Below the pieces are notes generated by a model. It saw only the letters and a program-made list of their open reading frames with translations, was not told the DNA's origin and ran no database searches. This document shows, piece after piece, positions 3,001 to 64,000 of a stretch of DNA of 64,000 nucleotides. Each line of letters begins with the position of its first letter. Position 1 is the first letter of the stretch. This stretch comes from Takakia lepidozioides (lineage: Eukaryota > Plantae > Bryophyta), in contig CM060734.1 of the NCBI GenBank assembly GCA_030704615.1, forward strand, positions 11,904,001 to 11,968,000. The letters are read 5' to 3'. A program made the translations under genes and the position numbers.

Positions 3001-4487
3001 TGCCCGCCCCCCCCCCAAAAAAAAGGGCCACCAATGTCACAAAGTCAACTCTGTCAGTAGCTTGGCAAGGTAGTGCCTCAGAATCAAAGGCCTACTGATT
3101 CTGGAAGAATTATTCAACTATCCTGATCTTCCAACTCGGATTGGCATTGATTGCATTCCTCCTGGGGATCTTTCCCCAGCCTTTCAGTGTGTGTCTCGTC
3201 CCGCCTTTATGCCTTCTTAAATGTTGGTGCCATCCTACTAGTAGTTGCCATCCTGTCCTTCTAAACTGCCTGTCATGGGGAACCTGGTGGTGGGGCTCGG
3301 AGCAGATGACTGCCTGTATTCGAAGTGTGCGATTGGAACTGCTTTCATTCCTGAGCTACGTGGAAAGTTCTTTGCCACAGAGAATTTCTTTTACACATCT
3401 GAGGTCTCTTTTCTTTCTCTTCTCTTCTATAGGATGATTAGACGTCTGCACTCTTGCAAGGCTTGAATTTTAGGTAAGTTTAAACAAGATAGAGGCTGAA
3501 ATTTCTGGCATGCACAAGTATGTATTAGTATCATTCAATCTATATGAAGATGGAATGCCTTGCTATATCAGCTTCTGGACAAAGGCTGCCTCCCTAGGAG
3601 CGAATTCACATAGCATGTTGAAAATTTCTCAGCTGGAAGAGGGATTCTTAATTTACAGGCTCTGACCGTTTAGTGGAAGATCTTAGCAGCAGAAGTGGTC
3701 TGTGATATCCACATTCTCTTTTTCCAGGTTCTGTCAAGTCCATCTTATCTTTTATGCCTTGGTTCTTTCTGGTATACAAGTGAGCAGAGCCCTTCATGAC
3801 CTTCTTCATTGTTGCCATACAACCTTCTGTTGGAGCTTTAGTCCATGCATTAATTCCACCTCTTTATCAGTTACCTCTATTAGCAACTGATGTCCTAGAA
3901 GTGGCATTTGGTTGCTTGTGTCAGTTTTTTCGATTGCCCACCACAACATCACTAGCAGAGATGGAATCGGCAGGAAAGTACTATTGTGGGGAGGACTGGA
4001 AAAGGCTGCAAGAGAAGCACAAGGGTATTGACCAGAAGGACTTGCTGAAGTACTGCTTCTCCAGTGCCTATATTGTTGCGCTAATGCATGACAGCCTGGG
4101 CATTGCTATGCACAGTGATGAACGGTGGGTTAGCTTTCTCTCCTACTTTCTTTTTCCAGCTTGGTTGTGAAATGTGCTCTGGTTAAGAATAAGGACGTCC
4201 TCATGTGGGGCTATGTCGGGTGCAGGATAAAATTCACAAACCAGGTTCATAATGTGCCTCTGGACTGGGCTCTAGGGGCACTGATTGTGCACCTCAGTGA
4301 GGAAGGGCAGCAGTCCGCAGGATGGATCTTCCAAGATGGGTTTCTCAAAATTTTGTCAATACTGGGGGTGGTAAGCTTAGGGGGATTGGCTGTGTGGGGT
4401 GTAGTACGGTGTCGAAGGCCGAACATCACAACAATTTACGATTTAGAAAAGGGGCGATATATCACAACTGCTGCCCGCATTCGCTGA
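27..4487 (+). CDS. Apyrase / NTPDase (GDA1/CD39 family), APY6-like, 8 exons: 27-714, 1572-1684, 2071-2178, 2311-2365, 2565(or 2568)-2762, 3306-3403, 3925-4124, 4226-4487; about 573 aa
   Basis: All five apyrase conserved regions are present: IIDAGSSGSRLHVF, LMATAGLR, ITGTDEGIYAW, IVELGGASTQ, DWALGA. There are N- and C-terminal hydrophobic segments and a YDLEKGRYI tail as in plant APY6-type proteins. GT-AG introns join in frame (1722 nt in total). Confidence 0.95.
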
Positions 4488-5149
4488 TTCATTATTTTTG
4501 GGAATACATAAATTTATTCATTTTATGCTTGCTAGTTGTTCACTTTCACGCAGCTTCTACTTGCTATGTATCCTACTTGTGGAAGTTGCGTGTCCTTGGT
4601 AACAGCACGTTGACTGCTGACACATTTTGCATGTCAATTTATGCTAACAGGGCATGAGCTCTTGGGTGTTATGTCTGGCTGTCTTCCAAATTTTGTGTGC
4701 AGCTGATTTCTGGAGAGAAGATTTACAATGTCATTGTAGCAGATGTCCATGCTACAATTTTACTTCCAAGTGGTTAGCTCATGGATCATACTATACGTTA
4801 AAAGCGGGCATGCCAATTTAAGGCCCTCGTCTCAGTACACATATGCCTACTTCAATCTCGGTTGATTAATCTTACTCATATTTGTGCAGTGTAATGCTGT
4901 TTGCTACAACCCCTCAGCCAACTTTTGAGGCCCATCCTATCCTAGATTATCTAGGATTGATTCAGTGGATCTTGAACCTGAATTGTTCTTATTTGCCTGA
5001 AATGAGTATTTTGAGAACATTTGATAACAAATAATAACAAATGTTAAATTCCCATGTCAAGCTCTGGGATTGAAAGATTTTGCACCTTTGACAGCTGCAT
5101 TTCACTCTTGCTGAAAAGAATGGTGTGCCTCATCTTTTTCACTGTACAT

Positions 5150-5930
5150 TTATTTTTTAAATTTAATTTAATTTTTGAACAGGGGAAGGCCCTGAATTAA
5201 TTTTATTGAGTTTATTGTGGGGAAAAAAATTAAAACCCCAGATTACACCATGAGGTACACACACCGTAGTCAGTGATGAACAAACTAACCTCCCGAAGGG
5301 AGAAGATGAAGACAACCTAGGGTTGCAAGCCCTATGTAGAAGTCACACCCCTAGGGGGTTGCTTTGAATGTAGGCAGTCGCTTCTGGACTGGTGAGATCT
5401 ACAAGGAATCCATGAGGTGAATGGCTTAGCAGCCGCTTGGAACCTGTCCGAAGCTTATTTGTGTGCACGAATGGATCTCAACGAAATTTCAGTCTAGCAG
5501 CCGATTTGATGTGGCGCCAATTGATATCCCTGTCAAACTCGGGGGACGCCGCCATGGAGGGGTGTGTTGAGGTCTCGCCATCGATCTGGCGGTTGAGCTG
5601 CCCAGGCACAGTGGGATGGTGACGAGCTAATGTAGAGAAGATCGTTTCTTGCCCAAGTGCTGGCGAAGTGACCGTGGATTGCTGCCGCTTGTTGGGGTCT
5701 TCTTGCGACATCTTAAGGACTCTGTTGGCTATTTGCCATAGCTGTACAGTTTCTTTTTGTAATGGATTCTTGGTAAGCTTGATTGTATATTGATTTCTGA
5801 GAGAGAATGTACTCATAAGACGTTGTTTGCCGTAGCCTTGTGGCTATTGACCCCGCGCCCAGTTTGAGTGGAAAGCAAAGGGATAGAACCTACCTCTGTC
5901 AGGGGCTGACATTGGTAGTAAGACTTACCT
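5150..5930 (-). mobile_element. L1-type LINE 3' fragment, homologous to the 3' end of the 27161-29340 LINE
   Basis: The 3' end (ggggaaaaaaattaaaaccccagatt...acacacaccgtagtcagtg) matches 27267-27322. The peptide SPEFDRDINWRHIKS matches SSEFERDVNWKHLKT in the other copy. Confidence 0.7.
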
Positions 5931-5939
5931 TTATACAAA

Positions 5940-7740
5940 GAATTGATTCAGGTTTTCCAGATATCCTCTAGAAATCCCATCACACAAGCATCAATCTGCT
6001 GTGTGTGATTTGCCCAAAAATTAGGCCTCAGAAGGGCCTGGGCTTTTGGCTCAGCCTCGAGACTTTCAAAGTTGGTAAACAGAGGTACAGGCACAATTCT
6101 CTTGAGGAGAGCTTCTCTCTGGTGAGAGTACCCCATACAGTGAATCATAAAATGAATTGTGCCCACACAACGGTAATTGCACTCTCCCTTTCCTCTCTGC
6201 TTCTGTTTACTGTTCAAAGGTAGGCTTCGTGCCCTGAGTTTAAATTTCAGTCTGGTGCCGAGAGTGGGTAGACCCTTGAGGTCATCCATGATATCCTCCC
6301 CCATGTCACAGACTGGAAACAGGTTCAGGGAAGTTTTCTGCCTAACTTCATTTGCATCAGACAATTTACTGGTAACAGACATGGTTTTGGACACTACAGT
6401 CTCTAAGTCAGATTTATCCAGCAAGGTCAAGACTTGCGGGTCCAGATTCAGATCCTTGAGAATATCTTCTACTCTCTTCTGCCATGACTCAGCCTGTTTG
6501 ACAGGGCGGTCCTGTTTCCAAGATATAGAGTCGATTAACTTAGGGTATCTGGTGTTGGACATGTGTTGCAACTGACCCCACCATCTGACCTTGAATTCAT
6601 CTCGTCGGGAGCTTAAGGAAGGGATGCCAAACTCACCCCGAATAGCCACATTGGCTGTTTTGGAGCATGCTGACATGCACTCATTAAGCATCCCCACTTG
6701 AATGGATTCTAGAGACTTAGCCTGGTTGGAGTTATCAACCCATATAGAAGATCCGTACTCCAAGGTAGGTCTAATAACGTGGCAAAGCAAGGTTTTCTTG
6801 ACCTCAGAGTTAATCCCTCTGCAGTGAAAAAATTTAGCGAGACTCAGCGCTTTGCCCTTGCCAGTTTGAACAACTTTCTGGATATGTGCATCCCAGTTAC
6901 AGTTGGAAGAAAACTCAACGCCCAGGTATGTGTAGGAAGAGAGGACTGGAATCTCTTGGCTACCCCACTGCCACTTAAGATCACTTCCTCCCTCTCCTCT
7001 GTCGTTGAATGCCACATTTACTGACATTAGCCTCTAGCCCCCAAAGATCAAAATATCTCTTCGCACAATCAATCAATTCCTGGAGGTTGGAAGGAGTCTC
7101 CCCTATGCCTGCGAAGTCATCCGCAAACATAAGGGCTGGAATGGTGGCATCACCCGATTAAGTTACCACTACACCCTTAGTAGTCTTCAGCGCTTGTACT
7201 TGCTGACAACTTTTCGGCTTGTACAAGCGTTGAAGGGCCAACCATAATCTCTTGTCATTACCACCATGGTGGTTTGAGTTTATTTCACTGTATAACTTGT
7301 CCCAATATAATTTCTTCTGAGCCCTTACAAACAGATTGATATCTTTACGGATCTGGTAGTACCTCGCCCACAATTCTTTGTTGGTTTTCAAATTGCAGCA
7401 CTCTTTATAAAGGACTCGTCTCTCAGCTATCTTGAGTTTAATCTCATTGGTCCACCAATTGACAGCTCTACCGCAGCCAATTAGTTTCCTCCCAATGATC
7501 TTGTCAGCCGCAGAGGAGACGAAACTCTCCCAAGAATCCATTGCTCTTTCGACTTCATTTCTTGCATTGTCAGCGCGAGACTGAAGGTCTTGGACCGAAT
7601 GGACAAAATGAGGAAGAGCCTCTTGCAAGGCCTGGACATACTCAGCCTTGACCTCTTCATTATGGAATTTTTCTATGTGCATTCACAAAAAATAGCAAAA
7701 ATGGCATTCCTGGGACAATGGTTGGAGCCTCGATGGGAGA
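5940..7740 (-). mobile_element. Non-LTR retrotransposon (RTE/RTEX-like) ORF fragment, internally deleted
   Basis: RT catalytic motif PALMFADDF at about 7110-7140, YTYLGVEF thumb motif, IRPTLEYGSSIW and a C-terminal C..C..HF..HC remnant. RT subdomains 1-4 are missing between 7158 and 7140. Confidence 0.8.
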
Positions 7741-9860
7741 CCTTGAATGGTTCCACGAAGGATGGGAATAGGAGGAGTGGAACCATAGTAAGAACCAACG
7801 TATTTTGTGGTGTTGTTGGTGTAGATGTTACCAATGAGTTGGATAACATCTGTAGGGTATCCTAAATCTGTCATGATGGCGAGCAGGCGGGGGTGGTCTA
7901 GGGATCCAAAGGCATTTTTGAAGTCGATGTAGAGAAGATAGATGTCTTGTTTGGTGAGTTTTGCATCTTCCAGAGCCGGTAGGACATATTATATCTGTCT
8001 GGTGGTACTCCTCGTAGCGTGGAAACCTTCTTGTGGGTCGCTGAGGATCCGGTGTTGTTCCCCATAGGTAGACAGCATTGTTGTCAGGGTGTTAGTGAAT
8101 AGTTTGTATATAATGTTAGCTAGTGCGATAGGCCTATAGTTACCAAGGTCCGTGGGGTCACCTTTTTTGAATAGTAGTATGGTCCTGCTATGCTTCCAAG
8201 AGTGTGGTATACGGTGGAGCTGGTAGCAGAGTTGGAAAAATTTAAAGAGGAGGTCATGGAATTGGGGTTCAAGTGCTTGGAGGATGGCGTTGGGCATGAG
8301 GTCTGGGCCTGGCGCCTTGGCTTTGGATAGGTTTTTGAGGCATGAGTCGTATAGGTCAATTATGAAGAGATTCAATATACGGTCTGTAGGGGGGCCGCGT
8401 TTTTCTAGGGAGAAACCGTCAAGGTCGTGCCACGGATAATGCTTGACTTTGCATAAGCAAGTGGGTGCGTGTTGGCTTGGATGCAGGCAATTAGAGACTG
8501 TGGGTGTGTATGAAGTCGATGTCTGCGACCATATTTCATCCCTAATGTCATCAGGTTTGGTTAATAGGTGGCCTAGTCTGCGTTTGAGACAGTCAATGGG
8601 AGGGTTAATTGCAGGATTGAAGATAGCTTTGTGGGCTCGTTCAGGGTGTTCATATAATAGTTTGCCAAAGGAGGCAACAATTTTTTTGTGATTGGCTGTG
8701 GCTTTTTCTTTTGTGATAAGGTATGCCGCTTTTTTTGCATTACGACCGATTTTGGATAGGGAGGCAAGCCATTGGGGAAGGGAGGGGGTGTCCGTGGGTG
8801 GAGGTAGGAGTGGTTGGCATACTTCTAATGTATTTAAACAGGTTATGCGGGGGTCAGTTCTCCGATTGTTATATGTCGGGGATGGGGAGTGGGGTATGAC
8901 GGCAAGGGCCCGTCGGATGGTGTGGTAGATATTGAGTTGGGAGGACCATGCCCGTTTCTGGGTCCTAGTGAGATATCCTCCGTTTTGCTTTGAGCGGGCG
9001 GTTTGTGGGAAGTCTGGGGGGGATGAACATGTGGCTAAGACACTTTTAGTCATGTCTAGCATCGTAGATGAGAGAGTAATCTCGGCCTCGGTCCATGCGG
9101 CCTCGGGAGATAAGAGTGTATTAGTGTCTGAGAGGGTAGAGGAGATCTTATGTATGAAGGTAGAGGAGGCCGTGTGACAGTGTTCTTGGAAGGCCTTGAG
9201 ATTGTTTTGTGGGATGGGTGATAGAATTATGGGTTGAGGGGGTGGGGTGTGTACGTCCGGGAGGGGTCGGAAGGGGATAAGAGATGGGGGAAAAGAGATA
9301 GAGATCGGGTAATGATCGGAGTTGCATAGGCTATTGATATGGACGTGATTGTGAAGATATGTGGGGATATCATTACTAAATCTGAGGTAAAAGCCATCAA
9401 GCAAGCTTAGGGAGGAGTAGTGGAGACCTCCTTGTCGGGAGTAGTGGTAATCGGCGGGGATATATTTGAGCTTTAGAGACTGAGTGAATTTGGCCCAGTC
9501 GTGATCCGGGGCCGAGGGTGGTTTGTGAATACCATTATATGAGTGACCTAACAGTGCAATGTCCCTGTTAAAGTCCCCTGCTAGGATGACGTGATGGTGC
9601 TGGTGGTCTGGGTGGGTGACTGTTTTGGGAAATACTATGCAGTATTTCCGGTATGAGGGGGAGGTCGTCTGTATGAGAGGGCATATATAGATGTATAAGG
9701 GTAATGGGGCATAGTGCTGGTGGGTGTAGTTGGATAATTTGTAGGTGTGAGCGGATGGGGATAGGGACGGTGATTTTGGTAGTGGTGTTGGGGGAATGGT
9801 GTGTGCGGAGGATGCCAAGTGCAACTCCGCCCCTAGTGGGCTTATAGGGTGCGGACCTAT
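7741..9860 (-). mobile_element. Dualen/RandI-like LINE copy A (APE endonuclease plus N-terminal half of RT), truncated
   Basis: APE motifs RGGVA, LYMPS, ILAGDFN, SDHYP. RT motifs KAPGPD, YRPIALAN, QEGF, YIDFKNAFGSLDH, DLGYPTD, RGTIQG. LINE status is secure; the clade call is from recalled motifs. Confidence 0.85.
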
Positions 9861-10130
9861 TTCGCAATGTTGTACTTAAGTCATTCCAGGTTAGGAAATG
9901 ATTATCAGGGAATCTTGCATACCATTCACTTGCTTTCTTTATAAATGAACAAGGAAACAATCTCATTTTGGCATCATCACCATTCACATTGTTCACAATA
10001 CACATGTGCTCAAATTGGCTGATGTCTACATCAGGATCCCATTTTCCTGCATATATTGGAAAAGGTGGTTTTGCCCGTGTTGGTTGTAATGCCATATGTG
10101 GCCCTACCCCCTGCCCACTGACAGGTGCTG

Positions 10131-13100
10131 TGTCGCGGCCCTTTGCCTTGAGGGCAAGGGGGTCGGGACACATGAGGGGTTGCCCCTGTGGTGGGGCAGC
10201 GGCAGCGATAGGTATGGGGGCTGAAGCACCCTTGAGTGCCCAAGGCACCCAAGGAGGCGGAGGCGCTCACTAGGTGGAGCCCCGCACACCGGGTTGCGGT
10301 GGGGTGGCTCCACAAGGGGTGGTGGTAGCTTAGCGGGACTTAGTGGGGGTGGCATATGACTCACCATGGGGGCGGAGACCTCGTGGTGGGAGTCGTGGGG
10401 AGTCTTGGGACTCATCACGGTCCATAGGGGCCGTAGTGAGTGGGCCAAGACTCACCGCGATCATCACCGGGAGTCGAGGGTTTTCGTGGTGGTTCACCAT
10501 AAAATGGCATGGCTGGTTGTGAAACCCCCACGGACAGCTACAGAAGTATATATAAGGGGAGTAGTGACCCCGAGAACGGTGCAAGCCCGTTGGTGACCAA
10601 AAACTAGTGAGTAAGCGAGCGAGCCGGAAAGCGACCAAAGAGTGGGGAGCTGTTCCGGACTGCCATCTACCAAAGGGAATTCTCCTAGTCCCAAATAGGT
10701 GGAGGGTTTAGTGGGAAGCGAAGGGGACCGTTATGTCCCGGTGAGCAGCCGAAGCTCCAAGTTGGCCCGGGCGGCTAGGTTGGGAGTCAGGCGCGCGCAT
10801 CAAAGCGAGTAACTATGACTTGAAGGGGAGCTTATCGAAGTGAGGTGCGCGACACTTGGTATCAGAGCTTAGAGTTCAGTACGCGATCGTCCTTGGGATT
10901 GGCCTCCTCATGGGGTCGGGCAAGCCAAAGCGAAAGCGGAACGGCCCAAAAGATGATGATCCTGGTGAGCCCGATGGGGGCGACGTGTCACCGAAGCGGC
11001 CGTTTGAGGAAGCGACGTAGGTTTCTGAAAGCGAGGCCGCTCAAGAGCGGGAGGAATCCGAGGAGTCGGAGCCCGAGGAATCCGTGAGAGCTCCGACCGA
11101 CCAACAGATGCCTCCCATGCCGGCAGCCTTTTGGGAAGGGTTGTTGGCGCAGTTTGGCGGGACGTTGAAAGACGTGTTGAAGGCGGCTAATGCCACTTCC
11201 ACTAAGGCAAAGTTTAAGGTGAAGCCTAAGGAACCTGGAACCTTCGAGGGCGTCCGAAATCGGAAGGCACTCAACACCTGGCTCCTAGAGCTAGAGCAGT
11301 ACTTCCGGGCGGCCAAGTTGAGTGACGAGGATCGGGTGGAAGTGGCTCCCACCTATTTGAGGGGCTATGCTCAACAATGGTGGCAGAAACGCCTTCACGA
11401 CCGAGGTCCAAGCCCGGAAACCTTGGACTGGAGTGGGTTCAAGGAATTGATGAAGAGACAGTTTGTGCCCCTCAACGCGTCCTGGCTTGCCCGGGACAAG
11501 ATGAGGAATTTGAAGCAAACAGATGACATTCGGGGGTATGTCCAGGCTTTCAATGTGTTGTTGCTCGAAGTCACGGACATGGCAGAACCAGAAATGGTCT
11601 TCAACTTTGTGGCGGGACTGGCCCCATGGGCCAGGCGGAAGTTGGAGGAGAAGCCACCCAAGACTTTGAACGAGGCAATTGAGAGGGCTGAATGTTTCTC
11701 GGATGTCCCTAGGGGCGAAAGACAAGGCCGTACGGAGCTGAACCACAAGAAGACCCGGCGGGAAGGTGACTCCTCCCGACCGGAAAGAAGTGGGATAGGC
11801 CACGCGGCGACAATGGCACGTGGAAATCGAAGGGAGGGCCTTCACACGTCAAGGCGGCACCCGGTGCTTCGAAAGGAAAAGCGGGTGGAGCGGCTTATGG
11901 CGGACAGAAGGCGACCTTTGATGGAGTGTGTTTTCAATTGCGGGGAGCCCGGGCACATGGCCAAGAAGTGCACAAACCTCGACAATTGAACATGACTCGG
12001 GCAACCACGGAGCTGTCGGAAGATACCATCAGTCGCTTGGTGGAAGCGGTGGTCGCCAGGACTTGCAAGGTAGGCAACTATTCTTGTGAGTTGTATCAGG
12101 AAACTGGCGCCCTACGTAAAGGGAGTCAGTTATTGTTCGTGGATGGGATAATATCCGGAACTAACGTGTCGTTGTTGGTGGACACAGGAGCGTCGCACTC
12201 CTTCATGACGCCGGCGGCGGCGCGAAAGTTGGGACTCCCGACAAGTGACGTGGGGGCCTCTATTGAGGTGCGTTCTGCAAAAGGAGAACCGCAATTGGCG
12301 ACAAGGTTGGCATTTAATGTTCCTCTTCAACTGGGGAGTTGGGAGGGACGTGAGAACTTCACCATCTGCGAGATCGATGGAGTGGATCTCATTTTGGGGA
12401 TGACATTTTTGAGCAAATCCGGAGCGGTCATAGATGGCCGCAAGAGAGTAGTCACGCTGCCATGTGGGAATGGTGGCGAGGTCTTACGAGTGTCGGAAAC
12501 GCCCAAATCCGTGGGAGGGCGAATAAACCTTCTGTCAGCAAGGGAGTGGGCCGTGGAGGAGGCACACGAGCCCCAGTTTTTGCTTTACATTAGAGAAGTG
12601 AAAGGGAGAAGGCGATGGGGAGCCGAGCCCAGATTGGATCAAGGGGATTTTGGAGAAATACCAGGATGTGATGCCGGAGGATTTACCAAGCGGCTTGCCA
12701 CCGCGAAGAGGAGTTGACCACAAGATTGAGGTGATACGGGATCGGAACCGCCTGCCAAGGCGCCCTACCGGTTGAGCCACAGGAGTTGGTCGAGCTGAAG
12801 ACTCAGCTCAAGGATCTAATGTCAAAGGGGTACATCCGGCCGAGTAAGTCACCTTACGGAGCCCCGGTGCTATTCGCAGATAAGAAGGATGGGACGCTGC
12901 GGATGTGTGTCGATTACAGGGCTTTGAATAAGGTGACTATCAAAAACCGGTACCCTTTGCCAAGGATCGACGACCTTTTCGATCGGTTGGCAGGAGCGAA
13001 GTATTTCAGCCGGATCGACTTGCGCTCCGGCTATCATCAAATTCGGGTGGCGGAAGGAGATGAGGAGAAGACCGCGTGCAGGACAAGGTATGGTTCATAT

Positions 13101-60785: not shown

Positions 60786-61720
60786 ATGAAAAAGGCGCAG
60801 GGGTCAACTGCATTGCCTTTTAATAGTTTGCTTGAGATTATGTGTGATGATGAGGAGGCGGTCTTGGAACAGTTGAATCAATTAATGGCGCATCACGATA
60901 TCAAAGAGATACGACAACTCCCTAAAGTAAGAACACCGGTGGTACCTCCAAATCAGAAGGGCGGTCCAAGTTCACAAGGTGAAGACATGGCAACAGCACA
61001 AGAGGAGCTTCCAGAGGAACAAACACGAGCCTCTAGTCAGTTTCTCTTCCCAAGAAGGTCTGAAAATTTTCCCGAGCTAGAGACAGGAAGATCTAAGATA
61101 TTAAACCATTTCTACAAATGGCACATATCCATGTCACCAATGGAGGTCATCATGCATGTACTGGGTGAGTTTGAGTAATTGAAAAGTTTGGTCAAGGTTG
61201 TGGAGAAGAGCAAATTCAATGCTTTTCCAGCCAACAGGGTTCAACATGAGTCCAAATTGGCACACGACACGAGTGACCCAGATCTGGAGGCAATATCATA
61301 TGCTTTCAGTGGCAAAGTGAAGGCTTTGCATGCTCTGGTTACGATTGGCAATTACCAAGTGATGGGCCAGATCGATACAGGGGCCATGATATCCGTGATA
61401 GCAGCAACCACATTAAGAGACTTGGGCTTAATGAGCTGTGTCACCATTGACAGGGACATGACATATCGGGTAGCTTCAGGTGCTGTTGAGACAACAATGG
61501 GGGTACTTGACAATTTGAAGGTTACAGTGGGAAAACTAACTAACAGGATCAGTTTTATGGTGGTGGACACTGACACATACAACATGCTGCTCGGACTAGA
61601 CTTCTTGAAGAAGTTCGGGGCAGCAGTGGATACGGAGACAGAGACACTGAGGGTCAGGTACGGACCTGGGCTCAATGTGGCTTACTTTCCACTCCACACC
61701 ATGAATCAATTGAAGCCAAC
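60786..61720 (+). mobile_element. Ty3/Gypsy gag-end/aspartic protease remnant
   Basis: QIDTGAMISVI...FMVVDTDTYNMLLGLDFLKKFGAAVD (retropepsin DTG and LLG.D motifs). Confidence 0.85.
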
Positions 61721-62160
61721 GATTGGCAACTTTTCAGCGTATGCCCCCTTCTTTTCAAAAAACTTGGTTAGCGTAACATTGAGAGCATCTAGGCATTTAT
61801 CTACTGGGCCAGTCACTAAGACCTCTTCCACGTCCTCTCCTTCCAAAGGTTCGAATGGTGTTTCCCCAATTTTGAACAGCCCTCTTTCCACTTGTATGGC
61901 GGTTTCGACCGCATCATCTACACTCTGAAATCTGGTTCCTAGCATAAGCTTCATAATCTCATGCCTAGAAGACCCCCCATAAACCTTCGACGTTGCTCTA
62001 GCTTAGGGCACTACAGAAGAGAAACGAACGAACAACAAGAGATAGCAATTAAGCAAGTTGCCAGGTCCAGTCTAGGTGTCGTGATGTTTTCTTGCTTCCA
62101 CTGCAGCTCATGTAGCATCGAAGCTGGACTGATGGCTTGTCTGATCAAGAGGAAGTGTTA
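61720..62160 (-). mobile_element. Probable retrotransposon gag remnant
   Basis: RRFMGGL...F.SVDDAVETAIQVE resembles a Ty3 capsid C-terminus. Confidence 0.5.
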
Positions 62161-64000
62161 GATTCTATCCCGGTGGGTGTGAAACAGGGCCCCCGTTTTT
62201 ACTAAACAGTATGTCTGTATGAAGGGGGTGTTGAACGTGTAGAATCAAAGTTAGGGTAGGTTCTTTCCGTTTGAGGTACTTGGGGAGAGGTGGGGGTATG
62301 AACATACTTAAGTTGATTTGGGTCAATTGTGGCGAGTAGATTGACCGCTACCGGGAGGCGTAGGAGAGGGTGAGAGGTACTAGGTATGTTTTGCTGTGTG
62401 AGGATGAGGATTGTGGAGGCATAAGGAGAAGAGTGACCTGCAAATTGTGCCCAGTGAAGAGCTTCGTGAGTAAGGGGGCTAGAGGGGGGGTGAGCAAAGC
62501 CCCGACCTTCCCAGATGTGCTGGGTAGCACTACCCGTGGCTCCAAAGATACAGTCTCTATGATGTGGGCTGGAGAATATGTGCAAGTCCATAGGACATGT
62601 CAGTGGGCTGGAGTGATACGAGTGGATGAGCTGAAAGGTGTTGATAAGTAAGGCAAGAATATCCTATGGTATGGTATGATGTGCACATGTCGTTTCTAGT
62701 CGAGCGAGGGATCGTGGTTTCTTAGGAGGGGTGTCTTTGAGGTATCAGTCAATAAGCCAGTATAATTCAGTAGCAAAGTCTTGCTTCGGGGGTTGTAGGG
62801 AGTGTGAGTATTCGTTTGTTGTAGAGTACTTTTCCCATAGCCACGCTAGTCGATTATTGGGGATAACCCCAATGAAGCGGCCATGTTGAGCATAGATGTT
62901 GGAGAGGCGAGGGCCCATGTGAATAAGTGGTTGGTCATGCTTGACATCTTTATCAGGGTTGCATTCAGTTATGCAGATGTGTACGTTGGGGGCAGAGATC
63001 GGTTGGTGGATGTATCGGTTATCTATAGGTTGGGTGGGGGTGGTGTGTTGACCGCGAGCTAACCATCTTAACAAGGGTTCAAGGAAAATGATAAATAGGT
63101 AGGGGCTTAGTGTGTCACCTTGGATGGTGCCTTGTAGGATGGGAATTGGGGGGGTGGAGCCATAGTAAGAGCCAGAGTATTGGGTAGTGTTGTTGGTGCA
63201 AATGTTACCGATGAGTTGTATTGCATCTATAGGGTATCCTAGGTCAGCCATAACAGCCAATAAGCGGGGATGGTCAAGGGATCCGAAGGCGTTTTCGAAG
63301 TCAATGTAAAGGATATCTATCTTGTTTAGTGAGTTTCGGTCTTCAAGGGCAGATAGGACATATTGATTTGTCTGGTGGTGCTGCGGGTAGCACGAAAACC
63401 TTTTTGGGGGTCGCTTAGGATGCGGTGTTGTTCACCATAGGTAGATAGCATTTTAGTTAACGTGCTAGTGAAGAGTTTATATATAGTGTTTGCGAGGGCT
63501 ATGGGCCTATAGTTGCTAAGGTCAGTGGGATCCCTTTTTTTAAATAGTAGGATGGTTCGGCTGTGCTTCCAGAGATGTGGAATACGGTGGAGCTGGTAAC
63601 AAAGTCGGAAGAATTTAAAGAGGAGGGAGTGGACTTGGGTCCAAGTGCTTGTAGTATGGCGTTTGGAATGAGGCCTGGGCCTGGGGCCTTAGATCGGGAT
63701 AGCGCTTTTAGGCAGGAGTGATACAAGTCTATCGTGAAGAGGTCTAGAATACGGTTGGCGGAGGATCCTCGCTTTTCTAGTGAGAAGCCACCTAGATCAT
63801 GCCATGGGTAGTGTTTGACTTCAAAGGTAGTTAGGTGTGTGTCGGCTAGGATGTAAGCAGTTCACCACGGTGGGTGTGTAGGAAGGCGAGGCCTGGAGCC
63901 AAATTTCATTTTTGATGTCTTCTGGTTTGGTTAGTAGATAACCGAGTTGGTGTGTAAGGCGGTCTATGGGCGGATTAATAGCACGGTTGAAGATGGCTTT
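62160..64000 (-). mobile_element. Dualen/RandI-like LINE copy D (RT N-terminal half, internal deletion, then post-RT region with PCIF1-like MTase fold); runs off the window edge
   Basis: Near-identical to copy A over RT (KAPGPG, YRPIALAN, DLGYPIDAIQLIGNI, QGTIQGDTLSPYLFIIFLEPLLRWL). It then continues NPDKDV...RLAWLWEKY...FATELYWLID*Y...SSPL...RDCIFGATG...AHPP. Confidence 0.88.

Follow-up and report, generated by a model that had tools for sequence, protein, structure and literature searches.

A PCIF1/CAPAM-like, probably non-catalytic methyltransferase domain in a decayed, putatively Dualen/RandI-type LINE of Takakia lepidozioides

Introduction

The ORF2 protein of LINEs usually consists of an endonuclease and a reverse transcriptase (RT), sometimes accompanied by an RNase H. 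Among these elements, Dualen is defined by an APE endonuclease upstream of the RT together with RNase H, CCHC and restriction-like endonuclease (RLE) domains; the domains listed for it are APE, RT, RNase H, CCHC, RLE and a peptidase, with a SET domain in cryptophytes (PMC5029228, PMC4640811).

In the m6Am cap methyltransferase PCIF1/CAPAM the NPPF motif is catalytic, and its mutation inactivates the enzyme (PMC8287941). Characterized m6A and m6Am enzymes all use a [D/N]PP[F/W/Y] motif, in which mutation of the first or last residue is inactivating (PMC8287941). Cap binding by CAPAM is split between its helical and methyltransferase domains (PMC8287941), the helical domain making up half of the cap pocket, and PCIF1 binds the C-terminal domain (CTD) of RNA polymerase II via a WW domain (PMC4738411, PMC8287941). 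The Pfam model PF12237 represents the CAPAM-like methyltransferase, not the WW domain (PMC7641849).

Two inactive relatives of such enzymes have been described. The polyproteins of DIRS1 retrotransposons carry a PCIF1-derived domain that was judged inactive from substitutions of catalytic residues (Iyer, Zhang and Aravind 2016, PMC4738411), and METTL14, which has lost its catalytic motif and cofactor binding, is an RNA-binding and scaffold unit that supports METTL3 (PMC8287941). While an inactive PCIF1-derived domain is thus already published for DIRS1, in LINEs it is apparently unreported: we found no such report in the literature on PCIF1 with Dualen, LINEs or retrotransposons. Here we describe a LINE family with such a domain, starting from a decayed copy in the Takakia lepidozioides genome.

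Results

The PCIF1-like reading frame of the window copy

The window is a stretch of 64,000 nucleotides (contig CM060734.1, positions 11,904,001 to 11,968,000). An earlier note, made from the letters of this stretch, had read one end of it as a LINE polyprotein with a PCIF1/CAPAM-like adenine-methyltransferase domain downstream of the RT. Translation of 62202–63260 (minus strand) reproduced the peptide quoted there exactly. The minus strand forms a single frame from 63260 down to 62202, with in-frame stops at 62745–62747 and 62664–62666, both inside the PCIF1-like module, and a terminal stop at 62202–62204. The motifs reported for this peptide are present in the order given: SSPL (62601–62612), RDCIFGATG (62532–62558), GFAHPPS with HPPS at 62481–62492, the helix with ALHWAQFAG, and the TILIL strand, read as STILILT (all minus strand).

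Comparison with relatives delimits the parts of the copy, all on the minus strand. The N-terminal part of the RT (63054–64000), frameshifted and with stops, was recognized by tblastx to positions 5939–6892 of the related contig L005 (35–70% amino acid identity, in three frames), by a weak Pfam RVT_1 match of 62748–63260, and by blastn to a second copy in the window. The 5' side of the element is cut off by the window end. Below the RT lies a deletion junction (63033–63053), and after it the PCIF1-like module, which begins with a conserved N-terminal extension (62748–63032; family profile A3 and a structural model of the relative P0001). This extension comprises a TECNPD motif and a β-meander plus helix (...LAWLWEKY...) and runs into the beginning of the methyltransferase-like core. 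The PCIF1/CAPAM-like (pseudo)methyltransferase core itself (62272–62663; P0001 match, profile A3 and tblastn) contains SSPL, RDxIFGxxG, the equivalent of the catalytic loop, the next helix and the TILIL strand, but lacks the final strand and helix that complete the fold. The remaining end of the frame (62202–62271) has no family homology. Here the LINE fragment terminates: tblastn alignments of relatives stop at 62272–62283, other genomic copies part from the window sequence at 62292–62293 in DNA contigs, and contigs of the unrelated flanking repeat diverge at 62200–62203.

A deletion in a dead copy

The deletion that had been suspected near 63045 is real. Window positions 63320–63054 correspond to L005 6626–6892 (RT) and 63032–62715 to L005 8427–8744, such that 63054 (L005 6892) and 63032 (L005 8427) flank a loss of about 1.5 kb, with both sides in the same window frame. 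Removed were the remaining RT (from the YxDD region onward), the thumb and the chromodomain. In agreement with this, residues 62–310 of P0001 align from window position 63032 downward, and the P0001 chromodomain (residues 1–26) is unmatched in the window. DNA runs of this organism, possibly the very source of the assembly, gave contigs identical to the window over 62643–62991 and 62962–63080, with zero differences. As these contigs cover the stops and the junction exactly, neither is an assembly slip.

What remains of the copy is the N-terminal part of the RT and, of the PCIF1-like module, about 80%; from the domain's last strand to the end of the element all is lost, and tblastn with the RNase H and C-terminal parts of P0003, P0004 and P0095 found no match anywhere in the 64-kb window. 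We conclude that the sequence at 62272–64000 (minus strand) is the dead remnant of a non-LTR retrotransposon, probably of the Dualen/RandI type, unable to make a working protein and without a function of its own.

The window contains another fragment of this LINE family, independent of the first, at 7740–9897 (minus strand; blastn, tblastx and tblastn). It consists of the C-terminal part of the APE and the N-terminal part of the RT, with a 611-aa ORF at 7989–9824, and has no PCIF1-like part. Its segment 7740–8630 is 77% identical to 63117–64000 at the nucleotide level (blastn), and the fragment matches L005 4700–6829 (tblastx) as well as the APE and RT of the related contigs L001–L008 (tblastn). 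Thus, outside the PCIF1-like module, only RT survives in the first copy, and APE plus RT in the second.

Architecture of intact relatives

Intact relatives encode, in order, an APE, the RT, a chromodomain, a PCIF1-like module of approximately 250 aa, an RNase H, and a CCHC motif with a putative restriction-like endonuclease, the PCIF1-like module having the chromodomain upstream and the RNase H downstream. L005 is collinear with this arrangement (APE, RT, chromodomain/linker, PCIF1-like domain, RNase H, C-terminal domain); its APE (Exo_endo_phos), RT and RNase H were called by Pfam. On another contig (L009), a 1228-aa ORF for APE and RT is directly followed by a 454-aa ORF matching PCIF1_WW. 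The restriction-like endonuclease was called from the motif series CCHC / RHN / KPD / ExT / KxxKY in P0003 and P0095, a region that gave no Pfam or PDB match (including P0095 residues 420–749 against the PDB).

Several independent contigs have intact ORFs that repeat the order RT, linker, PCIF1-like domain. This order belongs to the architecture of the family; the deletion did not create it. The proposal of an adenine-methyltransferase-like domain downstream of the RT in the polyprotein is borne out by this order, and the suggested link to Dualen fits the combination of APE and restriction-like endonuclease. Placed by this architecture, the element is probably a Dualen/RandI-type LINE. Named relatives were not obtained: a search with residues 1–230 of P0095 gave two already known members only, and the 70 proteins found with profile A2 were all metagenome-derived, none with an organism or an informative name.

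Homology to the PCIF1/CAPAM methyltransferase domain

Among 1.84 billion representatives searched, the 153-aa piece of the window copy (62663–62205) matched 90 proteins with E ≤ 1e-3, of which 35 had E ≤ 1e-10. The best of these (E 5e-29) is P0001; of the intact relatives it is the closest, at 52% identity to the window piece. Against family profile A3, built without the window sequence, the piece 63053–62748 covers positions 3–99 (103.6 bits) and the piece 62663–62205 covers positions 122–256 of 314 (134.2 bits); all three window pieces map collinearly on the family profile.

The window pieces themselves had no PCIF1 match in a Pfam scan even at E ≤ 10, and in the PDB phmmer found nothing beyond a chance match for the 153-aa piece (E = 1). 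Among the relatives, 43 of the 81 family members matched PF12237 at E ≤ 1e-3 and no other family was matched; P0015 (44.5 bits), P0116 (40.5), P0018 (39.6) and P0002 (34.9) scored above the gathering score of 31.1 bits. Relatives such as these are linked with the window by E values from 5e-29 to 1e-15, and the PF12237 membership of the window copy, as a matter of sequence similarity, is transitive through them. With the PDB as target, family profiles found CAPAM (zebrafish, human) first, in entries 6irx (E 2e-4) and 6irv. As a single sequence, P0018 matched 6irx at 0.005 and 6irv at 0.008, in an alignment that spans the catalytic loop and puts A-H-P-x-x of the family onto A-N-P-P-F of CAPAM, as the motif alignment in the earlier note had it; residues 208–410 of P0113 gave no match in the PDB. 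HPPS of the window (62481–62492, minus strand) is by this alignment and the family census the counterpart of the catalytic NPPF of CAPAM (N553–F556).

The predicted fold gives a third line of homology. AlphaFold models of P0001 reached a pLDDT of 83.6 and 79.5, with a confidently predicted Rossmann-like core and values of 89–95 in the part equivalent to the N-terminal extension. In a Foldseek search with the P0001 model the six best matches were all CAPAM (E 1.6e-6, versus 6e-3 for the next fold). VIA aligned residues 38–289 of the 289-residue model, conserved extension included, with CAPAM 417–663 (225 residues, Z 18.3, rmsd 4.0; next fold Z 8.4). The structural comparison that had been proposed, applied to the model of a relative, gives a strong match to CAPAM alone. 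In the ESM Atlas, the domain had a TM score of 0.72 to vertebrate PCIF1. A feature search of the Atlas yielded PF12237 clusters only, mostly labelled "Viruses", a label that we did not trust as taxonomy. The CAPAM helical domain has no counterpart in the P0001 model, and Pfam found no WW domain in any relative scanned.

PCIF1 was not used as input in any of the three lines (Pfam, PDB profiles, structure). Together, the Pfam matches of the relatives, the first rank of CAPAM in the PDB and the CAPAM-specific fold match uphold the PCIF1/CAPAM-like reading, and homology of the window domain to the PCIF1/CAPAM methyltransferase domain is supported.

Loss of the catalytic motif under purifying selection

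Across the family, NPPF is replaced by HP[P/H/T][N/D/T] (HPPS in the window), and the blocks shared with PCIF1, SYFSSPLTC and RDxIFGSxG, are retained. In a column census of natural copies, as opposed to a consensus or repaired element, 63 of the 80 relatives had His at the first position of the NPPF equivalent, and none had Asn or Asp there; Pro followed in 61 of the 80. Residues at the fourth position, among 79 members, included Asn (27), Asp (18), Thr (13) and Tyr (7), so that Asn and Asp together account for 45. The question whether NPP[FY] or HPP is ancestral is answered in part: no member with NPPF occurs among the relatives censused, a sample outside which the algal Dualen elements lie.

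In the domain core, dN/dS was 0.12–0.21 (10 pairs), compared with 0.08–0.09 for the RT and 0.11 for the APE in the same pair, and 0.26–0.53 in the tail beyond the core; these values come with a dS of 0.44–1.0, partly saturated, and from pairs of a related subfamily on metagenome contigs of unknown hosts, with no copies from the Takakia genome among them. By this measure, the domain is under purifying selection similar to that on RT and APE among diverged relatives.

Discussion

The window holds a dead copy of a LINE that is probably of the Dualen/RandI type, and we consider it likely that in active elements of the family the domain is a pseudo-methyltransferase, a required but non-catalytic module of the ORF2 protein. 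Since the catalytic motif is lost and the domain strongly selected, it probably binds rather than methylates. In active elements it would act between RT and RNase H, and by analogy would most likely hold single-stranded nucleic acid, either the template RNA of the element itself or its RNA:cDNA intermediate; alternatively, still as a non-catalytic module, it might keep the architecture of the polyprotein. The loss of the catalytic Asn and the absence of the CAPAM helical domain disfavor CAPAM-like cap methylation, and judged from these residues and domains the LINE domain probably does not act as an m6Am cap methyltransferase.

The strongest competitor, although we regard it as unlikely, is a domain that is still an enzyme, in which a rewired A-H-P-x-[N/D] loop would support SAM-dependent methylation of element RNA or cDNA. 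In the RNA the methyl group would be placed on the cap-adjacent or an internal A, and the modification of RNA or cDNA would mark or protect the retrotransposition intermediate. Selection as strong as that on the RT, the confident prediction of a Rossmann-like core and the conservation of His, of Pro and of Asn/Asp three positions later, along with SPL and RDxIFGSxG, all speak for this reading. The SPL and D..FGS.G blocks probably line the cofactor pocket, and with these blocks well conserved and His at the Asn position conserved at 79%, an altered working active site or retained SAM binding may exist. Against catalysis stand the [D/N]PP[F/W/Y] requirement of the known m6A/m6Am enzymes (PMC8287941), the lack of Asp/Asn at the first position in all 80 members with an aromatic residue rare at the fourth (Tyr in 7 of 79), and the missing counterpart of the cap-recognition helical domain in the modelled module. 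A screen for active PCIF1-like proteins likewise dropped ORFs without the catalytic motif (bioRxiv 10.64898/2026.10.22.757692).

Quite improbable in our estimate is the more specific proposition that a widespread LINE lineage of green organisms keeps a PCIF1-derived essential ORF2 module whose loop changed from NPPF to H-P-x-[N/D]. Such a module would still bind SAM, and would modify or specifically read either the cDNA or the 5' end of the RNA of its own element. If true, this would be the first case of a non-LTR retrotransposon using a nucleic-acid methyltransferase or a reader of methyl marks, and would add a new catalytic-loop variant to the N6-adenine methyltransferases.

For the DIRS1 domain, Iyer et al. 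proposed a mimic or decoy as an alternative (PMC4738411). Applied here, the domain would imitate host PCIF1 or compete with it, guiding the polyprotein towards RNA polymerase II during transcription or keeping the element's cap free of m6Am. Its derivation from cellular PCIF1 and its strong selection despite the missing catalytic motif would suit this role, but PCIF1 reaches the polymerase CTD through the WW domain that the LINE proteins lack (relatives have a chromodomain instead), and the cap-binding helical domain is absent; we hold this role to be very unlikely. Chance resemblance, or unrelated DNA such as a piece captured from host PCIF1 that the deletion brought up against the RT, might be entertained for window pieces without a direct Pfam or PDB match and separated from the RT by a 1.5-kb deletion, but is ruled out by the 90 relatives with the same domain, the collinearity of both deletion sides with one element (L005), the same domain order in several independent contigs, and fold and profile matches specific to CAPAM.

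The family adds two modules to the LINE ORF2, a chromodomain and a descendant of a cap-adenine methyltransferase, and offers a concrete object for asking how a LINE protein recognizes its template. For genome annotation, the LINE domain explains "PCIF1_WW" matches in plant and metagenome repeats.

Comparison with known systems

Compared with PCIF1/CAPAM (reference set: Pfam PF12237 and PDB 6IRV–6IS0), the LINE domain has the same fold and detectable sequence homology. The blocks ...F.SPL.C... and D..FGS.G are common to both, as are the structural elements surrounding the catalytic motif, a strand, a loop and a helix. It differs in having no NPPF, no helical domain and no WW domain, and in lying inside a LINE polyprotein. 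With Dualen/RandI, the relatives share an APE before the RT, and RNase H, CCHC and restriction-like endonuclease motifs after it, whereas the published domain lists include neither a PCIF1-like domain nor a chromodomain.

The closest parallel in a retrotransposon is DIRS1, which likewise has a PCIF1-derived, catalytically substituted domain within its polyprotein. DIRS1 is a tyrosine-recombinase (YR) retrotransposon with the order RT, RNase H, methyltransferase, whereas the present element is a non-LTR LINE with an APE and an RLE-like endonuclease and the order RT, chromodomain, methyltransferase, RNase H; no recombinase was found in the LINE relatives, in which the domain precedes the RNase H. 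The LINE domain is also nearer to cellular PCIF1 (TM 0.72) than to clusters adjoining RT_RNaseH (TM 0.57) in a comparison of Atlas folds. Unrelated retrotransposon classes would then each carry a disabled PCIF1-derived domain and, whether through independent capture or exchange, this would point to a general use of the fold in handling a retroelement's own RNA.

METTL14 offers a functional analogy, as a dead N6-adenine methyltransferase fold kept for RNA binding and scaffolding. It belongs to the MT-A70 clade and is a separate subunit, whereas the LINE domain is part of a retrotransposon protein with no known partner enzyme. By analogy, the role proposed here would parallel that of the dead METTL14 beside METTL3, and the idea put forward by Iyer et al. 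for DIRS1.

The Window Copy and Its Surroundings

The minus-strand reading frame running from position 63260 ends at a stop codon at 62202–62204, and is interrupted only by the stops at 62745–62747 and 62664–62666. Translation of the minus strand from 63260 to 62202 gave a peptide identical to the read-through peptide quoted in an earlier note on this DNA, and the motifs listed there were all recovered in place: SSPL (62601–62612), RDCIFGATG (62532–62558), GFAHPPS (HPPS portion at 62481–62492) and, within the same frame, the helix ALHWAQFAG and the strand STILILT. The reverse transcriptase (RT) lies upstream of this module, at 63054–64000, and is split across three frames.

DNA sequencing runs from this organism yielded contigs that matched 62643–62991 and 62962–63080 with zero differences. 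Both stops and the junction left by the deletion are therefore real, with the qualification that the assembly may itself have been built from these runs. A further 140–150 contig pieces matched at 90–95%, indicating that this genome contains many copies of the LINE family. Window 63320–63054 corresponds to positions 6626–6892 of L005, a metagenome contig carrying a relative of the LINE, and window 63032–62715 corresponds to L005 8427–8744 in the same window frame, so that approximately 1.5 kb is absent at window 63033–63053. Lost with this stretch were a chromodomain, the thumb and the part of the RT that begins at the YxDD region.

At the other end, the homology of the relatives with the window stops at 62272–62293, and no sequence resembling the family's RNase H or putative restriction-like endonuclease was found elsewhere across the whole window. 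From approximately 62200 downward the DNA belongs to another, high-copy repeat (window 62067–62203), with a summed contig depth of up to ~2000 (~50 for the exact contigs); beyond it comes a gag/protease ORF of an LTR retrotransposon, encoded on the opposite strand. Other genomic copies part from the window at 62200–62203, the outer edge of the LINE fragment. An aspartic protease ORF (61179–61925, plus strand; gag-asp_proteas, E = 5e-12) adjoins the fragment. The window copy is an ordinary fossil from which no working protein can be encoded, and the interest lies in its family.

Another fragment of this LINE family (7740–9897, minus strand) comprises the C-terminal part of the APE domain and the N-terminal part of the RT, both spanned by a 611-aa ORF (7989–9824), and lacks the module; it shares 77% nucleotide identity with 63117–64000. 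At 7740 it abuts another LINE-like element (5948–7682, minus strand), whose ORFs of 359 and 174 aa had no Pfam match. A Ty3-type gag (E = 7e-15) with protease is found nearby at 11084–12714 on the plus strand. As a whole, the window amounts to a nest of retroelements.

A Conserved Protein Family Behind the Segment

Searched directly, the window pieces gave a weak RVT_1 match as their sole Pfam hit and a chance match only among PDB sequences. An exhaustive HMMER search of 1.84 billion representative proteins with the 153-aa piece (62205–62663) identified 90 relatives at E ≤ 1e-3, 35 of them at E ≤ 1e-10, the best being P0001 (E = 5e-29, 52% identity). A 314-position profile made from relatives alone places three window pieces collinearly on the minus strand: 63053–62748 at profile positions 3–99 (103.6 bits), a short middle piece at 105–119, and 62663–62205 at 122–256 (134.2 bits). 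Read in this way, the segment is a conserved protein module with two stops, zero frameshifts and its C-terminal fifth absent.

A TECNPD motif is present at window 62950–62970 (minus strand) and in approximately 30 relatives. The motif, [T/N]ECNP[D/E], lies exactly 44 residues ahead of the start of the domain profile in every relative that has it, and is modeled by AlphaFold at low confidence. Next come a three-strand β-meander and a helix, modeled confidently, that align to CAPAM (PCIF1) from residue 417.

The Module Is PCIF1-Like

The module is PCIF1-like by four tests (Pfam, PDB sequence search, fold and a longer model), none of which used PCIF1 as input. PF12237 ("PCIF1_WW"), a misnamed model that describes the CAPAM-like methyltransferase and not a WW domain (PMC7641849), was matched by 43 of the 81 family members at E ≤ 1e-3, and no other family was matched; the PCIF1_WW match that the earlier note had proposed as a check is seen in the relatives and not in the window pieces themselves. 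Four relatives exceed the curated cut-off of 31.1 bits (P0015, 44.5; P0116, 40.5; P0018, 39.6; P0002, 34.9).

In PDB searches with family profiles the top hit was zebrafish CAPAM (6irx, E = 2e-4), with human PCIF1 next, and residues 1–190 of P0018 alone find both structures (E = 0.005 and 0.008). This alignment crosses the catalytic loop, setting A-H-P-H-T of the family over A-N-P-P-F of CAPAM, the same register in which HPP had been placed over NPPF from the window sequence. An AlphaFold model of P0001 residues 127–345, from the family alignment only (pLDDT 83.6, pTM 0.79), had six CAPAM entries as its six best Foldseek matches (E = 1.6e-6 to 9.5e-5; next 6e-3), in agreement with the fold proposed earlier. 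The longer model (residues 57–345, pLDDT 79.5) superposes on human CAPAM 417–663 with Z 18.3 and an rmsd of 4.0 Å over 225 residues, compared to Z 8.4 for the best unrelated methyltransferase. In the ESM Atlas, vertebrate PCIF1 and a chlorophyte PCIF1_WW cluster both matched with a TM score of 0.72, and RT_RNaseH-associated clusters, which may be DIRS-type domains, with 0.57.

The Module Belongs to the LINE

In L005 all domains lie on one strand: APE (Pfam Exo_endo_phos, 3338–5122), RT (5513–7756), chromodomain/linker (8244–8633), the PCIF1-like core (from 8652), RNase H (9431–9874) and a C-terminal domain (9932–10876). In L009, a 1228-aa APE and RT ORF is followed 50 bp on by a 454-aa ORF with a PCIF1_WW match. 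The order recurs in several independent metagenome contigs, and the placement of the module in the LINE downstream of the RT holds. Unrelated DNA joined to the RT by the deletion is ruled out by the same order on one strand in these contigs.

Three unbroken 700-aa ORFs (P0003, P0004 and P0095) each combine the PCIF1-like domain with RNase H (Pfam E = 2e-14) and end in a tail bearing CCHC, RHN, KPD, ExT and KxxKY motifs. By our own reading of the motifs this series would fit the R2-type restriction-like endonuclease pattern; Pfam and PDB searches gave no support for such an endonuclease. In P0001 a chromodomain (Pfam Chromo, E = 4e-9; residues 1–26) precedes the module. Chromodomains are familiar from Ty3/gypsy integrases and unusual in a LINE. 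In relatives the chromodomain lies between RT and module (L005 8244–8427), and it was lost in the window at ~63033–63053. Dualen/RandI elements characteristically combine APE with RNase H and a restriction-like endonuclease (PMC5029228, PMC4640811), and the architecture of the present element suggests that it belongs to this group.

Contigs from at least four metagenome samples (L001 3767–10940, and L002–L004) carry an intact 749-aa linker/PCIF1-like/RNase H/endonuclease ORF on one strand and, tail to tail at ~280 bp on the other, intact ORFs for APE (546 aa) and for RT (803 aa) of the same family. The arrangement may represent an inverted half-element, or a pair of nested copies both still open.

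The Catalytic Motif and Selection

Across the 81 aligned family members, the residue that corresponds to CAPAM N553 is never Asn or Asp: 63 of 80 have His there, and 61 of 80 have Pro at the next position. Pro, His or Thr occupies the third position, and the counterpart of F556 is Asn in 27, Asp in 18, Thr in 13 and Tyr in 7. The HPPS read in the window in place of NPPF is therefore what is usual in the family, and does not stem from decay of the window copy. The blocks common to PCIF1 (SYFSSPLTC and RDxIFGSxG) and the following W, G and HWARLAA helix are 70–90% conserved.

Selection was estimated by the Nei-Gojobori method on a related subfamily from five metagenome contigs (65–88% protein identity), and not on this genome's copies. 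For the PCIF1-like core dN/dS was 0.12–0.21 (10 pairs, dS 0.44–1.0 and partly saturated), with 0.11–0.23 for the upstream extension and 0.26–0.53 for the tail after the core. In the L005–L009 pair, the core (0.12) is close to the RT (0.08–0.09) and APE (0.11), and the module is therefore about as constrained as the enzymes of the element.

Discussion

A methyltransferase-like domain of DIRS1-type elements was placed in the PCIF1 clade and judged inactive by Iyer, Zhang and Aravind, with binding of template transcripts or mimicry of PCIF1 as suggested roles (PMC4738411); retrotransposon polyproteins with a disabled domain derived from PCIF1 were therefore already known. In the literature searched we found no report of such a domain in a LINE or in Dualen/RandI, and an opinion article holds that land-plant transposons encode no methylases (PMC6338049). 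Metagenome ORFs of the family are already labeled PF12237 in precomputed Pfam annotation.

We consider the module to be probably a pseudo-methyltransferase, a required but non-catalytic part of ORF2. CAPAM and related m6A enzymes depend on the NPPF loop for catalysis and are inactivated when it is altered (PMC8287941). An enzyme with a rewired, still active loop is favored by the conserved His and by the blocks common to PCIF1, but seems unlikely. Somewhat less likely still is a PCIF1 decoy, against which the absence of the WW and helical domains argues. Chance resemblance or foreign DNA is refuted.

The most plausible role of the module as a pseudo-methyltransferase would be to grip the RNA template, or the RNA:cDNA intermediate, between RT and RNase H; alternatively, the module may act as a scaffold. 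CAPAM grips the cap between its methyltransferase domain and a large helical domain (PMC8287941), whereas the LINE module covers the methyltransferase domain only, and is without the helical domain, the WW domain, the catalytic Asn and the aromatic residue. For such a non-catalytic module, METTL14 and the DIRS1 domain, as proposed by Iyer et al., provide the parallels.
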